Translations under genes and position numbers: made by a program
Assembly: GCA_010909165.1 (NCBI GenBank)
Contig: MU008182.1
Span: forward strand, 558,001-622,000
Length of the DNA stretch: 64,000 bases
From: Anthoceros angustus
Lineage: Eukaryota; Plantae; Anthocerotophyta
Direction of reading: 5' to 3'
The notes under the pieces: generated by a model
Told to the model about the DNA's origin: nothing
Databases searched by the model: none
Seen by the model: the letters and a program-made list of their open reading frames with translations, nothing else
Part shown: piece by piece, positions 31,863 to 43,214 of the stretch
Position numbering within the stretch: position 1 is the stretch's first letter
How the letters are laid out: every line of letters starts with the position of its first letter

Positions 31863-32813
31863 CTACAAACCCACCTCGTTCTTGCTCATGTATCTCCTCT
31901 CATAAAGGCCAGTGACCTGATCAGCCACAGCCCACATTATGGCCTGTCCAGGTGGGATTCGCATGAGTCTGGGGAGCAGACCTTTCCACAGAGCCCGCAG
32001 CCCTTCCTCCTTGTAGATGTGCCCTATTGCATGAAACATGCCAGTGTACCTCACATCCCCGTGGTCTGCAAACCTGTGCTGTGCCATGAGCCGGGTCTTG
32101 ACAACATCGAAGGGGCCCGTGCACACCGGCCCGGCCACACCAGCCGTGAACCCCGAAATCATGGACTGCCAAGGCTGCAAAACCTGGCCATCCCCGTCAT
32201 TCTTATTCCAGAACAACCCATCGAACTTGTTCTTGGCGTAGAACATGACAGCCTGGTTGCACCCATTTCGCATAACCGTGGGGGATGCTCCAGCCCACAG
32301 CCCTGTGATCCCCTCCTGCTTCACGATGGTGGCAGCACAGTGCACGGGACCTCTGTACCTGAGCAGCTCGGGAGACAGCCCCCGCTGCTGCTGCAGCCTG
32401 ATCTTCACCACCTCGAAGGGCGTCACGATCACCAGAGCCTCCAGCACTCCAGCTCCGAATCCAGCTGCCACCCTGCTCCCCTCGCTCAGCCTGCCACTGC
32501 TGTCCGCCAGCGCTCTCTGCAGCACCGCGTTTGTGCCCATCCGCAAGGTGTACTTCAAGGTCAGGTGGGTGGCAAAGGGAGTGAGCCCCTTCCACAGCGC
32601 CCGCACGCCCTCCTCCCTCACAATTTTCAACCCGCAGTCCAGAATTCCCTTGTACTGCTTCGCCCGATCCAGCTGAAGCCGCGTCTTGATCACATCGATG
32701 GGCTGCAAGCACACTGCCTCCACCAGGCCGCCCAGAGACCCCGAGATGGCCTTGATGTGGGGCGGAATTGAGCTCTCCTTCCGCCGGCCAGCAGGGGGGC
32801 CATCCGAGCCCAT
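31863..32813 (-). CDS. SFC1: Mitochondrial succinate/fumarate carrier, intronless (start MGSDGPP at 32813)
   Basis: Three carrier signatures (PIDVIKTRLQ, PFEVVKIRLQ, PFDVVKTRLM); KGLTPFATHLTLKYTLRMG; RLMRIPPGQAIMWAVADQV. Confidence 0.93.
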   Translation of the reverse strand: MGSDGPPAGRRKESSIPPHIKAISGSLGGLVEAVCLQPIDVIKTRLQLDRAKQYKGILDCGLKIVREEGVRALWKGLTPFATHLTLKYTLRMGTNAVLQRALADSSGRLSEGSRVAAGFGAGVLEALVIVTPFEVVKIRLQQQRGLSPELLRYRGPVHCAATIVKQEGITGLWAGASPTVMRNGCNQAVMFYAKNKFDGLFWNKNDGDGQVLQPWQSMISGFTAGVAGPVCTGPFDVVKTRLMAQHRFADHGDVRYTGMFHAIGHIYKEEGLRALWKGLLPRLMRIPPGQAIMWAVADQVTGLYERRYMSKNEVGL

Positions 32814-35039
32814 CTCACCAGCCCTGGTCACGTGACTGAGCCCGGATGCGGGAAGGGGAATGGGCCTCCAGGCTCCCCAGATCCGCTGCCTGCCGGAGCC
32901 CGGAAGCTTCCCCTTCGTTCCACCCAAAATTCTGAGGGGGTCCCGGTGAATCTTTAACGCAACAATTGCGACTACGGGCCGAATTTATTGCCGCCCCCTG
33001 ATGCGTATCCGCAGAATGCATCATCTACAGGAGCTGTCGCGTTTCAGCCTCACGCCCCGACTCGACAGCGTGCTCCATATGATACAGTCACTGTATTCGT
33101 GGGGCCACAACGTCCCTGTTCAACCTCACCTCGTGATGAGAGACTGCCATATGTGTCCTTCGCGCTTCTGTACAGGACTCTTCCATGATGGCAGTGAAAT
33201 GCCTTGCCTAATGCGGATGCAATTGGGGCTTGGGCAAAAGAAAGCATACAAACAATCGCGATAAGAAAAGAAACCACAAAAACCGACGCATATTTTGGAT
33301 AATTATGATGTACAACAAGAGAATCTAACTACAGGTGGCATAGGTCTACCGTATGCATTTTGTCCCCAGACGAAGACGCCCGGTATTGAAAGCCCTAAGA
33401 AAGCAGGTGTAGAATTCATAATCTCTTGAAACGCTTTAGATCGGCTCGCTGTTGGTGGATGCCTTCAACAATGGTTATGATACAGCTTTGTAATTGGAGT
33501 CTCAAAGCCCAGAGCGGTGAAGACTAGAATTGGCTCAAGGTATACACGCAGCCACTTGAGACCACCGTCATACATATGATATATGAATCACTGTGTCACA
33601 GGCCATGGCCATGGTAATCTTGTCAGAACTGCGGTATGTTTGCTGGAAGGAGCATTAGAACATACTTCCATTGCTTGTTGCCATGTAGTTCTGTGTCCTG
33701 TTCTTCACCCCCTGGAGAAACTACTTCAGTCAATGCTGCAGCCATTCCAAGAACTCTTGTTTTAAACAGTAGTGGTGGAAGAAGCTACACAAAGCACGCG
33801 CACCTCCTGATATCATGTCTTTTAGGCGATTCGATCACAAAAATATCCATCATCCGATTCGACGGTTGATCCCTTTCGCCACCTACAACATTAACAACAC
33901 ATAGAAAGATCCAGGTCACATCCGGCATGCCGGCAATGTGCTGGGAAGTTCGGAACCAGTGTCTACCGCAAAATGTTTCTACGTTGAAGAGTGCTACGTA
34001 AAGCTAGAAATTAATTCAACTGCTCTGCTGCGACGAGACATTCGACTTCACAACTCTTCGCATAAACCACGATGAGCCAATCACTCTACTGGTAGCCACA
34101 AGTAATGAAATCTCCGCAGCAACAGCCTTGAGCTGCAAATTCAGAGATGCATATACTTGCCTTCCCATCCGTACATAGCATGGAGGCCCTTCTTATCCAT
34201 CCACAGCAGTCCTTCTTCTAGCGAGCTCAGTTCCACATCTGACAGTGGAGTCGGACCGGATTGCTGTTCCTTGGCTCCCGGACCACGCTTCACGAATGCA
34301 GACAATGTGATCCGCATCTTGCTCCCAACGTGCGAAGCCCCGGTTTCAAATTTTCCAAACCATATTCCCACACTACCACGCACCTGTTTCCAAACTCCCT
34401 CGCTCGCAGAAATATTCATATTTCATATCACGTTTCCTTGTGCAGCACTGCAGATATACTTGGAAGATAGTCCCCGAACTTGCCGATCCATACAAGAGGC
34501 TGCTCCTCACAGCCTGCAAGGGCCTGGTCTCAAAATCTTCCTTCCACAGCAGCGCGACATTGAACGAGGATGGCCGCGGGCGCCACAAGAACTTTCCGAA
34601 TACGTTTCGAAATTCGGATAATAGACTACTGAATTACAATTCAGCGCTAGGCTATAAAAGTTACATACGCCCTTTGCCTCGACTGACGAGAAGCAGCGAA
34701 GCCTCAAGCAAAACAGGCGGAGAGGCAAACCTCATTCTAGTCACTCTCACGGACCTAAGCTAGAGTTGCTTTACTTCTAGAAACCTTGTGTGGATGGCAA
34801 AACTTTTTCGATGCAAGTCGTTGTCAACGCAGAGTTCCTCTTTTTTTTACATAGATTCACTCCCTTACTCTAAAGCATTTGGCGCTCATGTCAGCTTTCT
34901 TTGAGAATCCTCCCAAGAGAACCAAAACAATTTAAACCTTCCAGCCATATTTGGAAAACCAAATTAGGAGAACAAGTTAAACATATATTGAGCTAGCGCC
35001 TTGCCATTTACAACCCCACATAGACTCCATAAATCCTTA

Positions 35040-35504
35040 CTACCTATAAGAGTTGGCAATGTTTCTCCAGTATCTCCAATGATCATTGGGATACGCTGGA
35101 GCAAGAGTACTAGCACTACTAGTAGCTGGCAATGATTGGTGTTGTTGCATTGAGGCAGCAACTTTATGAGTACCAAAAACTGGCCATAGCTCAGCACTAT
35201 AGCCTAACTTTCCCTCTTGGACTAATAGACCTTCTTCCATCAACCTTAGTATACTATCATACATCATATCGTTTGAATGCTCACTATCTTTTTCTTCCTC
35301 GTGTTTCTCAGTTGCTGAACTAACCATTAACTTTTCCACGCAACTAGATAATTTCCTAGCAGTTGAGTAAGCCATTACCTTTGCCATGGCAAATAATTTA
35401 CTCCAGCCTTGGTGCTCCAACGCTACAGCATTTGATATTTCTTCTATCGAATATGAGTCTCCAGTATATGAGTCTCCAGTATCATCCATCTTTTTTCTTT
35501 CCAA
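35040..35504 (-). other. Unidentified ~150-codon ORF/exon within duplication copy 1
   Basis: Open frame LEHQGWSKLFAMAKVMAYS..MMYDSILRLMEEGLLVQ; polypyrimidine acceptor ttcttcAG before 35504 and donor AG|GTAG after 35044. Confidence 0.35.
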
Positions 35505-35860: not shown

Positions 35861-36031
35861 TTAGAGTGGTAAAGGCATCAGGTCGCAAAGGGAAAGTTTC
35901 TTTTCTCCCAGAAGCCCAATTATCGTGGAGAGTTGAAGAAGGATGCGACGTACAAGGTGAAGTCTACAGGTTGCAAACCCACTGCCAAACGAGGGCACCT
36001 CTTGAACACTATTGTCATAGACGACCGAAGA
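35861..36031 (-). pseudogene. Truncated 3' fragment of the beta-helix gene
   Basis: Homologous to the last ~50 codons at 38541-38699; CAA-to-TAA change (SPR*) and a short frameshifting deletion. Confidence 0.75.
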
Positions 36032-37190: not shown

Positions 37191-37227
37191 AACACATGGT
37201 CTCAATATCTTCCTACCACATAAGCGC

Positions 37228-38699
37228 GCCGCGGGCGCCACAAGAACTTTTCAACGACGTTTTGAAATTCAGGTAATTGACTACTTAAATTACAATTCAG
37301 CACTAGGCTATAAAAGTTAAAATACAGCCTTTGCCTCGCCTGAAGTAAGCAAAAGCGGCGAAACTTCAAGCAAAACAGGCGGAGAGGCAAACCTGATTCT
37401 AGTCACTCTCACAGACCCAAACTAGAGTTGCTCTACTGTGGGAAACCTTGTCTGGATGGAAAAACTTTTTCGATGCAAGTAGTTATCAGTACGTAGTTCT
37501 TTTGTTTTTTTTATGCATAGATTTGCTGCCTCACAATAAAGCACTTGGTGCCCATGTCAGCTTTCTTTGAGAGTCCTCCGAGCAGAACCAAAACAAGTTA
37601 AACCTTCCAACAATATTTGGAAAACCAAATTTGGAGAACAAGTTAAACATATGCCGAGCTAGCGCCCTGCCATATACAACCCGTGATGAACTCCATAAAT
37701 TCTCATTACCTATAAGATTTGGCAATGTTTCTCCAGTGTCTCCATTGATCATTGGGATAAGCTGGAGCTGGAGTATTAGCACTACTAATAGCTGGCAATG
37801 ACTGATGTTGTTGCATCGAGGCAGCAACTTTATGAGTACCAAGAACTGGCCATAGCTTAGCATTGTAGCTTGATTTTCCCTTTTGGACTAATAGACCTTC
37901 TTCCATCAACCTTAGTGTTCTATCATACATCATATCGTCTGAATGCTCACCATCTTTTTCTACCTCATACTCACCATCTTTTTCTTTCTCATGTTTCTCA
38001 GTTGCTGAACTAACCACTACCTTTACCACGCAACTAGACAATTTCTTAGCAGTTGAGTAAGCCATTACCTTTGCCATGGCAAATAATTTACTCCAGCCTT
38101 GGTGCTCCAACGTTACAGAATCTGATATTTCTTCCAACACTATCGAATATGAGTCTCCTATATCACCCATTTTTTTTCTTTCCAATCGAAGCAAAATAAG
38201 ATAGAGCTTTGTGAAAGGAAGCAAAATAAATAAAGAGCTTTGTAAGATACTGTTCAAAAATAAATCACCATATATAGAAAGAAATCAGGAGGTTTTTCTA
38301 AGAAATCTCGGATTAGAAAGTCACAATTGTAGGGTCACTCATTGACCCATCACTAAAATTAATTTCGAAGAATTATTTTTTTATTTGATTCTATTATTCT
38401 ATTATTATTATGGATAATAAGATTGACTCTTCACTAAAGTGAAATAGTTGGTTCTTGTTTTATAGAGGCTCCATGTCGCCTTTTTCTATTCTTAGTATGG
38501 AAGGGTATATAGAACTTTATTATTTAGAGTGGTAAAAGCATCAGATCGCAGGGGGGAAGTTTCTTTTCTCCCAGAAGCCCAATTGTCGTGGAGAGTTGAA
38601 GAAGGATGCGGCGTACAAGGTGGAGTCTACAGGTTGCAAACCCACTGCCGAACGAGGGCAACTCTTGAAACCTGGCTCGTTGTCATAGACGACCGAAGA
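37228..38699. repeat. Copy 2 of the ~1.46-kb direct segmental duplication; overlaps the 3' end of the beta-helix gene
   Basis: Collinear with 34573-36031. Confidence 0.92.
37706..38257 (-). other. Unidentified ORF within duplication copy 2 (paralog of 35040-35504)
   Basis: Same reading frame kept open; ends SYR with a conserved AG|GTAA donor-like site. Confidence 0.3.
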
Positions 38700-40795
38700 T
38701 GTTTGCACCCCGAAATCCAAGCCGGCTTCGTCCACAAACTGGACCTGCTCAGCATTGAACACGTCGTAGGAGATGGTGTTGAGGTTGGGAACGCTTTGGA
38801 GCCCGTTACAGTTGGCCAGGTACCCAGGAAGGGACTTGTTGTACCGCTGCGGGTCCACCACGGTGATGCGCAAGCTGTTCTCCGTCGGAATTCCACTGCA
38901 ACATTCAACAACGTTGCGACGCATCACCGATTTGCATTTCAGAGATTCGATCTCCCTACTAAAACAGACTAACCGGTAGACCAGCGGGCGCTGGCACGAT
39001 GCATGGTCTGTTGGTGAGACTGGAAACAAGATTTATGTTTCCAATTGCAACCGTATTATAGTCTGGAATAGCTACCTGCAATTTCCTGTGACAGCCGCCG
39101 TGGGCTCGGTCCCGGCAGGGTTGCAGTCGATGCCGTTGATGGAGGTTCGCGCACAGAAATCTGTGAGATAAGGGTAGGCCTGCAGCGGATGCAACCAGAG
39201 ATGGACGACATGTAGTTTGGAACCCTAGGCAAGAGCATGCTTATGGTGAACATGAGGATGCATGTGTGGGGAAAGGAATAGAATTCGAACCTGCCGGATC
39301 GCGGTGGAGTTGTATTGTGCAATCCGTGTGGCCTCCCAGTAAGTGCCGGGGTCCGCGGCGCAGTTGTTGATGTCGTAGTTCTGGCAGCTGATCCAGCCTG
39401 CCTGATACCGGGGTTCCACCACCAGCAAGCTGGAAACTGCGTTGTTCTTGCCAGTGTTGAGTTTCACTCCGTTGGTGGTGTTGTAGCACACTCCGCCCTC
39501 CACAGTCACGCCGGAGGAAGCCCAGTCCAAGTAGATGCAGTGGACGCCGTTGATTATGTAGTTGCAGGAGAGGCGGTTTCCTGGGTTCACCCAGTGGGTG
39601 TCGAAGTAGATGCTGCCGGAATCGGCTGTGGTGGTGAAGTCCGGGGTGACATGGATGTAGTTGTTCACGATGGTGGTGAGCATGCAGTCGCCGACGTTGT
39701 GCGCGTTCTTCCCGCACTGAATCGCTGTGAAGACGTTGTTCTCCAGGTAGTTGTTGGCTATCGTCACTCCAACTGTCTGCCTGTTCTTGTCACGGTCATG
39801 GAACCATGATTTGAATCATGAGCTGTTTCAGGACATGCTTACAGTGTTTACAAGCTTGTCGAATGTACAAACCTGTAGAGACATATGCCGTCCGTACTGC
39901 CGTAGATCCTGCTGTTGGAGATGACGACGTCAGATCTCTCCAGGTTTGGCCCATCGCCATTGTAGCTCAATCTGACCGCAGCGAAATTGGAAGTCTCTGT
40001 CCGGATGAGCAACGAATCCAGGAGCGTCTGGTTTGTTCTCAAGACGTCTATCCGTCCATGCACCGTTGCCTGATCATATGCATGAACCCATCCATGGCAT
40101 GAGCGGAAGGTGAGACAAGAAACGTTTTTCGCATCACAAATGAATTTAGTATTTGTGTGCAGCTGGCTTGCATGATGCATGCATTGGTACCTGGACAATC
40201 TGCACTCCCCACGACCCGAACACAGAAATTGCTGGGCAGTTGGCATTCTGAGAGTCGCCTTCGGGCAGCGTGGTAGAGCAGTTGGCATACGTTTCCTGCT
40301 CAGGGAGGCGGAACCCAACGTTCTGGATGAGCACATTGTTGGTGTTCCAGACGAGGATTGCTGGGACGGAGTCATCCGCCGTGGAAACGTTGAATCCCCG
40401 ACCTTGTTCTCCACTCGCAGATCTGAAGATGGTGCACTGGTACTCCTTACGGAACTCGATACTTTTGGACACCGTAATGTCCTTCTGGAGCGTGAGAATC
40501 ACGGTCTGGGTGTTGGGATAGTTGGTGCGAGCAACAATGTCGCTGGCGCTGTGCACATCCACGGTCACCGCCTGGTCTACTGATGTGCATGGTCCCCCTG
40601 CCACACGTGATGACAGGCAACCTTGTTGACGAAACTTTTCAAGGAGCAAGCATACTAACAACCAATGAAAACAGCTATATCAAAGCTTGACTTGAAAAAA
40701 TTATCACCAGTTGCTGAAGCAAGCCTGGAGTAGGAAGGAAGTAGGAGCAGACACAGCAACAGCCATACACAAAAGAGAGCCTTGCCAGGAGACAT
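38541..40795 (-). CDS. Secreted right-handed parallel beta-helix (pectin-lyase fold) protein with GH141-like motifs, ~554 aa; exons 40795-40708, 40621-40191, 40069-39873, 39780-39291, 39179-39076, 38895-38541
   Basis: Signal peptide MSPGKALFCVWLLLCLLLL; beta-helix rungs (VTIANNYLENN, TTIVNNYIH); DSGSIY..GNRLSCNYI..CIYLDWASSGVTVEG..YN..NGVKLNTGKNN; FVDEAGLDFGVQTSS. The joined CDS is 1665 nt and in frame. Confidence 0.8.
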
Positions 40796-41399
40796 GGCTA
40801 AATCTGTTACAGTAGAAATAGAAGCTGCCCAAGTGGATGTAGCAGTGTGGAAGCTGCCCAGACAAACGCTCGTCGATGATTCCATTTCCAGATCTGGCAT
40901 GCCTTTTAAGGAATTCATCGGCTTGCTGTCTGATCGTTGTAAAGTGGTTAACGCAATGCCATGTTAACGCCGTGTCGAAGTTTTACCGTGCGCAGTGATT
41001 GAGTTGGATTTCTCCTCGATCACTAATCATGATGTGTCACCACAATCCGACACATGCTGGGTTCGGCATGCAAAACCCCCTTCCTTCGGAGGAAGATGTC
41101 AAGGGCCTCACGTAATCATCAATCCATGTCACACTCCATGGCAGACAGAAAAGACGTCTTGAATACAGACAGCAAGCTAGCTTGCCGAGGGAGAGGACAT
41201 GGCCCTCGAATTCCAGGCTTCCGTGCGACGTCGTGTTTCAAGTGTCGTCCTCTGAGCACCCCTGTTGAAGAGTATACCCACATCTGAAATGAGCTTGAGT
41301 GTTGGTTTTTACTCTGTCCAATAGCTGCAGGGAAGCAGCCAAGCTCCTGTTAGAAGACACGTTTCTTTAGTCCTAGTGGCCGTGAGTTCAATTCATCAG

Positions 41400-42010
41400 A
41401 GGAACTGTACTACTTCTCCCGATCAGATTCTGCAAAGTTGGCCATCTCGGCAACAGAATCTGAATCTGATGCGCCTGTGCCACCAGACTGAGTCCTACTG
41501 GGAGAAAACTTGCTACAATCTAAATCCAGCAAAGAGCTGCGGTCATCTCAACTGTAGTCCTGTACACGTGCACCCTCGGGTTCTTGGATACGTGACGGCA
41601 GCTTCGTTACATGATACAAGGAGGCTTCGTATCGAACCCAGCCCTTCCTTCATTTCCGGTCGCTCTGGTGATGTCCTTGGCAAGCACTGTGCAGCCAGAG
41701 CGCAAGTACTGTGGATTGATGCCTTCCCAGCAGGAGTATAGAATATATCCAGCAGACAGGGGTCAATAAGACGTTCCCAACCCCCGTTTCTCATGACAGA
41801 AACTGCCAGATTCTCCAGGCTTGCGTCCCTACTGCGCCGCAGAACATCCCTTGGAGATTCAGCAAAGATGACTTCCAGCAAGCAGCACCACGCCAACGCT
41901 GTAGACATCACGTTTGGCCGCCCAGTACTGGAAGGTATTGTAGTACTCCCGGTCCATGTAGCCGATGGCGCCCTGTATACCTGCAGTTGACACATAAAGC
42001 TTGAGCGGTT
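41400..42010 (-). pseudogene. Receptor-like kinase C-terminal fragment (subdomains VIII-XI), frameshifted and 5'-truncated
   Basis: STAGIQGAIGYMDREYY..DVYSVGVVL, then a frameshift to LLEVIF..LIDPCL..ALAAQCL..ERPEMKE. Confidence 0.8.
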
Positions 42011-43214
42011 TGTGGAAGGAGGCAACTCTCATGGATCTGGGGTTATGTTGGAAGGACGATGTCTGGGTGCATCCAAGCTTGAGGCGGGTTCTGGGTTGCT
42101 GATTGATCTTGCAACGTGTCAGCTTGGGACAGTACCCAAAGTTTTTCTCAGTCGCTCTTTGCTTGGTTGTTTGGGCACCAAATGGTGGATGGTGGTGGTG
42201 ATTCACTACCCTTGCTCAAGGTTCTGAAGAAGAGAGGGGATGCCACAAGGTTCTGACGAAGAGAGGCGATTCATCTTCTGGAACCTTTGAGATTGCCGAT
42301 GAATCAATGCTACAAAATCTTTTCCACAATAGGAGGCCCAAGCATGGTTTAGGGCTACCAAGCAGGACAAGAAGCCCATTGTTTAAGGCTAAGAAGATAG
42401 TCAATCCCTGACAGGGTTGATGCTGGTGACTTCTGGCTGATGTGAATAGCACTCTCAAATCCTTCAGTGTCGATTTTTCCTCACCTTCAAAGAGCATAGC
42501 CTTTCAGTTTTTCCTCAGCTTTAAAGAGCACAGCCCCTCACTTCATATTCTAAGATCACAATTTATTCCTTCCTCTAAGTCTATACCAGTAAGTTCATGT
42601 CTTTTGGCCATCTTTTGGGTAGGGAAGTTCATGTCCTTTGGCCATCTTTTGGGTAGGGAAGTTCATGTCCTTTTGCCATCTTTTGGAGCTCCCTACCCAA
42701 GGTCCTGCAGATACCAGAATATATCAGAGATTTGCTGTTTTCTTAGCCTAAACTAGGTTTCTTAACCACTGCAAGGGCTTCTTAGTCCTAAACCACCGCT
42801 TGGGCCTTCCTGTCGCGGAAGAGGTTTCGCAGCATTGATTCATCGGCAAACCCAAACGCTGCAGAGGATGCATCCGCTCTCTTCTTCAGGACCTTCTGCA
42901 AGAGTTGATGTTCTTTAGGATCTCCCGGTTGTCTCAAATTTTCCAAGGCAACAGGTTTTGAGGGGTGCTCAAGAAACCGGAGCACGGTGGCTGGGTGCAG
43001 CAGGTCCAGTCCAGGACAGATGGTGCTCAATTTATGGGGGCAGCTGCTGCCCCACTCACTTTCTCACATTCTGAAGGTCAGGTGCTTGGGCCTTCGCCAA
43101 TCCAAGGTTTTGGACCAGCCCACGGGCAGGTTGATGTGCCTCAAGGGGCTTAGCAATTTTTCGTGTCTGCACAGGCATTAGGATATGGGGGTGCACAGGG
43201 CCAGGGCGTCCTTC

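Follow-up and report, generated by a model that had tools for sequence, protein, structure and literature searches.

The enzymes of glycoside hydrolase family GH141 cut fucosyl and xylosyl linkages in rhamnogalacturonan II (RG-II), xylan and fucoidan. The founding member, the alpha-L-fucosidase BT_1002 of Bacteroides thetaiotaomicron (PDB 5MQP), has the right-handed parallel beta-helix fold that is also predicted for the family described here, and other GH141 enzymes are Xyn141E of C. thermocellum and the marine endo-fucanases. In this study, we analysed a 64,000-nucleotide (nt) stretch of DNA from Anthoceros angustus (contig MU008182.1, positions 558,001 to 622,000 of the forward strand), which as a whole is referred to as the window. 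It contains a spliced gene on the minus strand (40795..38541), which an original prediction, made from the letters alone, had described as coding for a secreted beta-helix protein with GH141-like motifs that might have been acquired from a bacterium. We show here that the window protein belongs to a small unnamed streptophyte family of secreted beta-helix proteins. The reading that we favour, with a probability of roughly 0.6, is that of a functional nuclear gene for a secreted beta-helix protein of 546 amino acids (aa), likely an extracellular glycoside hydrolase, which was inherited vertically from a streptophyte ancestor and lost in most land plants.

The likeness to GH141 is invisible in single-sequence searches and lies, besides the fold, in a series of motifs common to BT_1002 and the family (N.I, G(I/V)..G.G, CM.N, D.AG(I/V)Y and YL..D..SS..TV). 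Unlike GH141 enzymes, the family has a eukaryotic signal peptide, about 17 Cys in a conserved pattern, a Cys-rich C-terminus and spliceosomal introns. The best whole-chain shape matches are bacterial right-handed parallel beta-helix repeat proteins (PF13229, with or without NosD, Pel9A-like or DUF1565), which are also the nearest language-model clusters and have the C-terminal motif F.D...GDF.L...SP in common with the family; in contrast to these bacterial proteins, the window exon translations remain below every Pfam threshold. In plants, the GH28 polygalacturonases, PL1 pectate lyases and CE8 pectin methylesterases are of the same fold, are likewise secreted and act on the cell wall, but their structural alignments with the family are shorter (about 280-300 residues, Z 22-24) and there is no sequence match. 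Finally, alginate C5-epimerases (AlgE4/AlgE6, AlgG) and PL6 lyases give top or tied structural Z values of 24-26 at an identity of 10-14%; when the family profile was searched against the PDB, no epimerase was matched and the alginate lyase AlyF-OU02 appeared at chance level only (E 0.8-1.1).

The six-exon gene and its product

Reading the minus strand directly from the letters gave six exons, which are listed here together with the 3' untranslated region (UTR):

40795-40708, minus strand: exon 1, with the ATG at 40795-40793; signal peptide; 29 codons plus 1 nt, the next intron being in phase 1
40597-40191, minus strand: exon 2, N-terminal cap and first beta-helix coils; motifs GPC...SCTI...CPA
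40069-39873, minus strand: exon 3, beta-helix coils; motifs GRID...DS...SN; ends in phase 2
39780-39291, minus strand: exon 4, the largest (163 aa); conserved core with the candidate active site
39179-39076, minus strand: exon 5, start of the Cys-rich C-terminal region; YPYL..FC....NG..CNP....TGNC
38895-38541, minus strand: exon 6, C-terminal region; F.D...DFG...S......F.SCPRS.VG; stop codon 38543-38541
38443-38540, minus strand: 3' UTR, minimum extent, as the transcript-like contigs of runs X2 and X3 reach 38443

All five introns (110, 121, 92, 111 and 180 nt in order) have GT..AG borders, and the three codons that are interrupted by introns give Gly, Arg and Ser. The coding parts of the six exons add up to 1641 nt, that is 546 codons and a stop. 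A start codon further upstream was not found, there being no ATG from the 5' ends of relatives' contigs (about 40854-40861) down to 40795.

Splicing was checked against assembled contigs from four small runs, which represent three coded organisms and are 90-95% identical to the window. Each run yielded a single contig that covers the whole set of six exons, with a length of about 1.9-2.1 kb. The spliced contigs skip the introns 38896-39075, 39180-39290, 39781-39872 and 40070-40190 exactly, while the skipping of intron 1 is approximate, within 1-4 bases and with 1-4 additional letters at the joint. The joint between exons 5 and 6 (38895/39076) is present in all four runs, and that between exons 2 and 3 (40069/40191) is also found in spliced contigs. 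These contigs are complementary DNA (cDNA)-like copies of the spliced orthologue of close relatives, and they support the six-exon model including its last acceptor at 38896/38895. The six GT-AG exons joined in frame of the original prediction are borne out by the minus-strand reading and by these contigs, which give transcript support to the junctions, for intron 1 approximately; the open six-exon frame stands, whereas the length, put at about 554 aa, has to be corrected to the 546 aa counted. Two other gene models were considered. A last acceptor at 38958, which would give a 567-aa protein, was ruled out by the spliced contigs and the family alignment, and a seven-exon model with a donor at 38975/38974 is frame-inconsistent. 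When the window was compared with one relative's contig, 24 of the 40 listed differences fell on third codon positions (p=5e-4), and this excess points to purifying selection on the beta-helix gene.

Longer contigs (0.5-6.8 kb) in all four runs match the gene only in a 44-nt stretch (39359-39402, encoding ..GWISCQNYD..), with 2-3 mismatches. These are probably paralogue transcripts in related species.

The translation of exon 1 is a typical signal peptide, in which a hydrophobic core is followed by the predicted cut in ...ASA/T. After this cut, 17 Cys and six N-x-S/T sequons remain in the protein, and the translation contains no second hydrophobic stretch beyond the signal peptide that could form a membrane helix. 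A signal peptide, many Cys and no transmembrane helix are what had been predicted, and the motif string quoted along with these features was recovered in full, with all of its motifs in exon 4 and the C-terminal motif F.D...DFGV..SS in exon 6. From these features, the protein would be expected to enter the secretory pathway, to be disulfide-bonded and glycosylated, and to act outside the cell.

A family shared with zygnematophyte algae

Throughout this work, the queries were single-exon translations or database homologues, and the structure described below for the full length is that of a homologue. In scans of Pfam and NCBIfam none of the exon translations gave a match, exon 4 alone gave a chance match only in a PDB sequence search, and in a word-indexed search with the same exon a single fragment passed the length filter. 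By an exhaustive HMMER search, on the other hand, exon 4 was found to have 120 matches among 1.84 billion cluster representatives (best E=5e-86); 53 of these 120 are below 1e-30, with identities of 40-55% and of 76% for the best. The named family members come from Spirogloea muscicola, Mesotaenium endlicherianum, several Closterium strains and Netrium digitus, and are thus all zygnematophyte. The exceptions are one diplonemid transcript (Namystynia) and unnamed Logan or JGI sequences. Neither the cluster look-ups nor the HMMER and word-indexed searches revealed a named land plant or a bacterium among the relatives of exon 4, and in a tree the unlabelled strong matches group with named Closterium proteins in a clade of good support. 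In a few targeted searches of the literature, no relevant paper was found on GH141 or beta-helix genes of either Zygnematophyceae or hornworts.

The window exon translations tile an alignment of 27 homologues collinearly, with all five larger exons in order and the split-codon residues fitting, and the nearest algal relatives are 45-55% identical. The Cys pattern of the family is also present in the window protein. In the core encoded by exon 4, the family alignment has 23 invariant positions, including D31, D53, H62, D85 and K106, and all 23 are found in the window. The Asp codons 39623-39621 (in DSGSIY) and 39527-39525 (in YLD), both within exon 4, are invariant across the family.

In Spirogloea muscicola the family occurs in many copies, with tandem arrays and fused gene models. 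Several algal models from Spirogloea (P0002, P0004, P0122 and P0123) and Closterium (P0005 and P0127) are 1000-2077 aa long and contain two to four tandem beta-helix units. Such models probably result from the merging of tandem gene arrays during annotation, and reveal a family that has been strongly amplified locally in Spirogloea and Closterium. The diplonemid sequence (P0106, from the transcriptome of Namystynia karyoxenos) is a distant relative, genuine or contaminant, with E=1e-5 to exon 4; it retains the core motifs and the C-terminal tail GDL.L...S....PGF....F.SIGPQ. Two paralogues were found in the plant DNA sample SRR33208241 (L001:4539-6572 and L002:4642-6583), with exon-4 identities of 76% and about 60%, respectively. 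The second of these adjoins a PP2/F-box gene, and the flanks of the two paralogues show no synteny with the window beyond the beta-helix gene itself.

Fold, likeness to GH141 and a candidate active site

A full-length homologue from Mesotaenium (P0011, 541 aa) was modelled with AlphaFold2 (AF2) using the family alignment, which gave a predicted local distance difference test score (pLDDT) of 90 and a predicted template modelling score (pTM) of 0.90. In this model, a right-handed parallel beta-helix leads into a C-terminal region that is rich in Cys and partly helical, and the AF2 model of the window exon 4 translation (pLDDT 89) also consists of beta-helix coils. As modelled, the fold of the family is therefore a right-handed parallel beta-helix of the pectin-lyase-fold superfamily, and the beta-helix of the original prediction agrees with the model of P0011. 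Using VIA-align, P0011 gave Z values of about 25-26 with AlgE epimerases, a phage tailspike, NosD, PL6 lyases and GH141 BT_1002; among these top structural matches BT_1002 (Z 25.1-25.6) had the highest identity (16%). Plant and fungal GH28 enzymes aligned with the P0011 model over fewer residues (Z 22-24). By the Pfam scans, in which neither the exon translations nor the 27 homologues matched these families, the protein is not a plant GH28, PL1 or CE8 enzyme, which agrees with the likeness of its motifs to other proteins in the original prediction. The exon-4 core, folded alone, gave Z 9.5-11.5 for many families and did not discriminate between them.

When P0011 was compared with the ESM Atlas, the best matches, all of them bacterial PF13229 Beta_helix proteins, had template modelling (TM) scores of 0.70-0.72 over about 430 of its 541 residues; GH141_M is present in one of their clusters. 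The language-model neighbours are Beta_helix clusters as well, mostly bacterial and one of them fungal. Weak Pfam matches to PF13229 were found in 13 of the 32 rows scanned (best 2.8e-7).

Two profiles, A1 for the whole family and A2 for its core with window exon 4 as the first row, were searched against 177,635 PDB sequences. The top match of A1 was BT_1002 (5MQP; E=0.0036), followed by a bacterial parallel beta-helix protein (9rx2) to which the C-terminal F.D...GDF.L...SP motif was aligned. For A2, BT_1002 was the only match (E=0.036). In the hidden Markov model (HMM) alignment, the family residues D53 (DSGSIY) and D85 (YLD) are placed on BT_1002 chain positions 528 and 569, which are 41 apart, and this spacing is that of D523 and D564 of BT_1002. 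In a 2025 paper on GH141 fucanases (PMC12786026), in which Ndeh et al. (2017) is cited, it is stated that Asp523 and Asp564 are essential for BT_1002. The GH141 likeness of the original prediction is thereby upheld in that both profiles find BT_1002 as the only credible PDB match and that the HMM alignment suggests invariant family Asp residues as counterparts of its two catalytic ones; the relation is, however, only remote and the E-values are marginal.

If the analogy with GH141 holds, the two Asp residues on adjacent helix coils (in DSGSIY and YLD) would serve as acid/base and as nucleophile or base in the hydrolysis of a glycosidic bond. The substrate would be an extracellular cell-wall or mucilage polysaccharide. 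Zygnematophytes and hornworts both produce abundant mucilage, and taking this together with the substrates of GH141 enzymes, a mucilage or pectic glycan is a first and speculative guess. Hydrolase activity, catalytic residues and substrate of the window protein are all proposed here by analogy.

The same fold might also be used for another chemistry or for none, in which case the window protein may be a lyase or epimerase resembling PL6 or AlgE/AlgG enzymes, or a glycan-binding or adhesive wall protein. In structural Z, GH141 is equalled by AlgE epimerases, PL6 lyases, NosD and adhesins, and beta-helix scaffolds serve a variety of activities. However, BT_1002 is the only one among the PDB beta-helix chains that was chosen by both profiles, with a motif-by-motif match around the two Asp residues, and 23 invariant core positions that are polar or Gly point to an active site and not to a mere scaffold. 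We regard a different chemistry, or none, as doubtful and continue to favour an extracellular hydrolase.

A number of points nevertheless weigh against the reading of a vertically inherited gene for an extracellular hydrolase. The two E-values on which the GH141 link is based, 0.0036 and 0.036, are marginal for a search of 177,635 sequences, and the offset of +5 between the chain index and the BT_1002 numbering was derived from the spacing and the chain length. Structural alignment of the exon-4 core model (1-133) with BT_1002 (chain 401-566) implies a coil register other than that of the HMM alignment, so that the equivalence of the Asp residues is unconfirmed in three dimensions. Furthermore, in the P0011 comparison no more than 1 Z unit separates GH141 from epimerases, lyases, NosD and tailspikes, and the domain GH141_M (PF21231) was not matched at E<=1 in any of the 32 rows scanned. 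The absence of the gene from other land plants is judged by named matches, while 10 strong matches are unnamed Logan sequences. In addition, the spliced contigs stem from relatives and not from reads of this genome, and the RNA nature of the runs is a tool's guess, none of them being recorded as RNA. Because the E-values are marginal, the coil register differs and GH141_M was not detected, we call the family a remote relative of GH141-type enzymes and not a member; it is also shorter, with about 540 aa compared with about 620 aa in GH141.

Descent of the gene and its surroundings

Intron positions were mapped in three Closterium genes for which DNA was at hand (L003, L004 and L005). The intron between exons 4 and 5 (39180-39290, phase 0) has the same position and phase in all three, and the intron between exons 2 and 3 (phase 0) has the same position and phase in one Closterium gene (P0042). 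Many truncated or mis-called family models, including one from Spirogloea, break at the border of exons 4 and 5 and continue with V (GT...). The two SRR33208241 paralogues keep most of the window introns; the last intron is absent in both, and L001 has an extra intron in the exon-4 region. As two introns are common to the window gene and those of Closterium, the genes of the plant and the algae go back to a single eukaryotic gene that already had introns, and any transfer from a bacterium would predate this common ancestor.

The bacterium-to-plant transfer proposed in the original prediction could consequently not be upheld in the form in which it was stated. Among the matches of exon 4 that were examined from the 1.84 billion representatives, no bacterial protein was found at E<=1e-3; the word-indexed profile search returned family members only and no bacterial relative; and a scan of 185,579 bacterial and archaeal genomes with the A2 pattern gave 16 pattern matches but no relative. 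Nesting within bacterial clades, which such an origin would entail, was not shown, as no bacterial sequence relative was found that could be placed. Read literally for the hornwort, the proposal would amount to a recent transfer that is specific to this plant lineage and has a bacterium as the donor. It could appeal to the absence of the family from named land-plant proteins in our searches and to a fold of bacterial type, but the nearest relatives, at 45-55% identity, are algal and no bacterial one was detected, the two introns shared with Closterium contradict a transfer, and the gene sits among ordinary plant genes. Such a recent event is thus extremely unlikely.

An ancient transfer of a Beta_helix or GH141-like gene from a bacterium to a streptophyte, in the lineage from which Zygnematophyceae and land plants arose or in an earlier one, with introns, signal peptide and disulfides added later and divergence to a point where the sequence is no longer recognised, is a different matter and is compatible with vertical inheritance as an earlier step. 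This is suggested by the closest ESM Atlas shapes and most language-model neighbours, which are bacterial Beta_helix proteins of similar size, by the PDB profile matches, which are bacterial only, by the narrow eukaryotic range of the family and by the alignment of its C-terminal motif to the bacterial protein 9rx2. On the other hand, the exon-4 search, the profile search and the genome scan gave no bacterial relative, and hence no nesting in a tree, and the fungal Atlas cluster and the diplonemid relative leave an old eukaryotic origin equally possible. We consider an ancient transfer of this kind possible, though on balance rather unlikely.

In a tree of exon-4 sequences, the window clade groups with a Spirogloea gene and unnamed sequences, and not outside all algal genes (Shimodaira-Hasegawa-like approximate likelihood ratio test (SH-aLRT) 88), while the deep nodes are unresolved. 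Together with the patchy range of the family, whose named members are confined to Zygnematophyceae and this plant lineage, this grouping might be taken to reflect transfer of an intron-bearing gene from a zygnematophyte-like alga to the plant. However, the family is old and multi-copy, so that vertical descent, too, would be expected to make the plant gene the sister of one clade of algal paralogues; about two losses suffice if bryophytes are monophyletic, and the deep nodes do not decide the matter. A transfer from an alga is accordingly held to be improbable. The simplest interpretation is vertical inheritance, with loss on about two occasions among land plants: the gene would have descended from an intron-bearing gene in an ancestor shared with the Zygnematophyceae, and would then have been lost in most other land plants.

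Besides the beta-helix gene, the window contains the following features:

31866-32816, minus strand: mitochondrial succinate/fumarate carrier (PF00153), single exon, 73-78% identical to land-plant proteins and 66% to that of Mesotaenium
35884-36006, minus strand: dead copy of part of the beta-helix gene, namely its last 41 codons, found by tblastn, blastn and pairs of open reading frames (ORFs)

In a carrier tree rooted with Mesotaenium, the window carrier lies inside the embryophytes but outside the seed plants and Marchantia, together with unnamed sequences, and this position is consistent with the hornwort host that had been suggested. The dead fragment belongs to a tandem segmental duplication of 1.5 kb, in which 34525-36031 copies 37197-38699 at 81.5% identity, including the last 41 codons and the 3' UTR of the beta-helix gene. 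A neighbouring small gene is also covered by the duplication (ORFs 35040-35504 and 37706-38257, minus strand). Just upstream of the beta-helix gene, at 41543-42206 on the minus strand, there are ORFs with motifs of a receptor-like protein kinase.

The locus is thus, on present evidence, not a demonstrated case of bacterium-to-plant gene transfer. It represents a new, unannotated family, found in algae and a hornwort, within a known kind of secreted beta-helix carbohydrate-active proteins. Families that are limited to the Zygnematophyceae and one bryophyte lineage show an inheritance of the first land plants that most of their descendants discarded. Annotation of the Pfam, NCBIfam or CAZy type is lacking for the present one, although it occurs in multiple copies in mucilage-rich algae and comes with an active-site hypothesis based on two invariant Asp residues. 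A more far-reaching proposal, which we regard as speculative and unlikely to be right in all its parts, is that the window gene is what land plants have retained of a new carbohydrate-active family, which would be distantly derived from bacterial GH141-type beta-helix hydrolases by an ancient transfer before the split between Zygnematophyceae and land plants, was amplified in mucilage-secreting conjugating algae and was kept only in hornwort-like plants. There it might remodel mucilage rich in fucose or xylose, or pectin resembling RG-II, perhaps in the mucilage cavities with cyanobacteria. If the protein is indeed a hydrolase, the family would form a new eukaryotic branch beside GH141 and would provide a handle on the turnover of mucilage or pectin in hornworts and their algal relatives.

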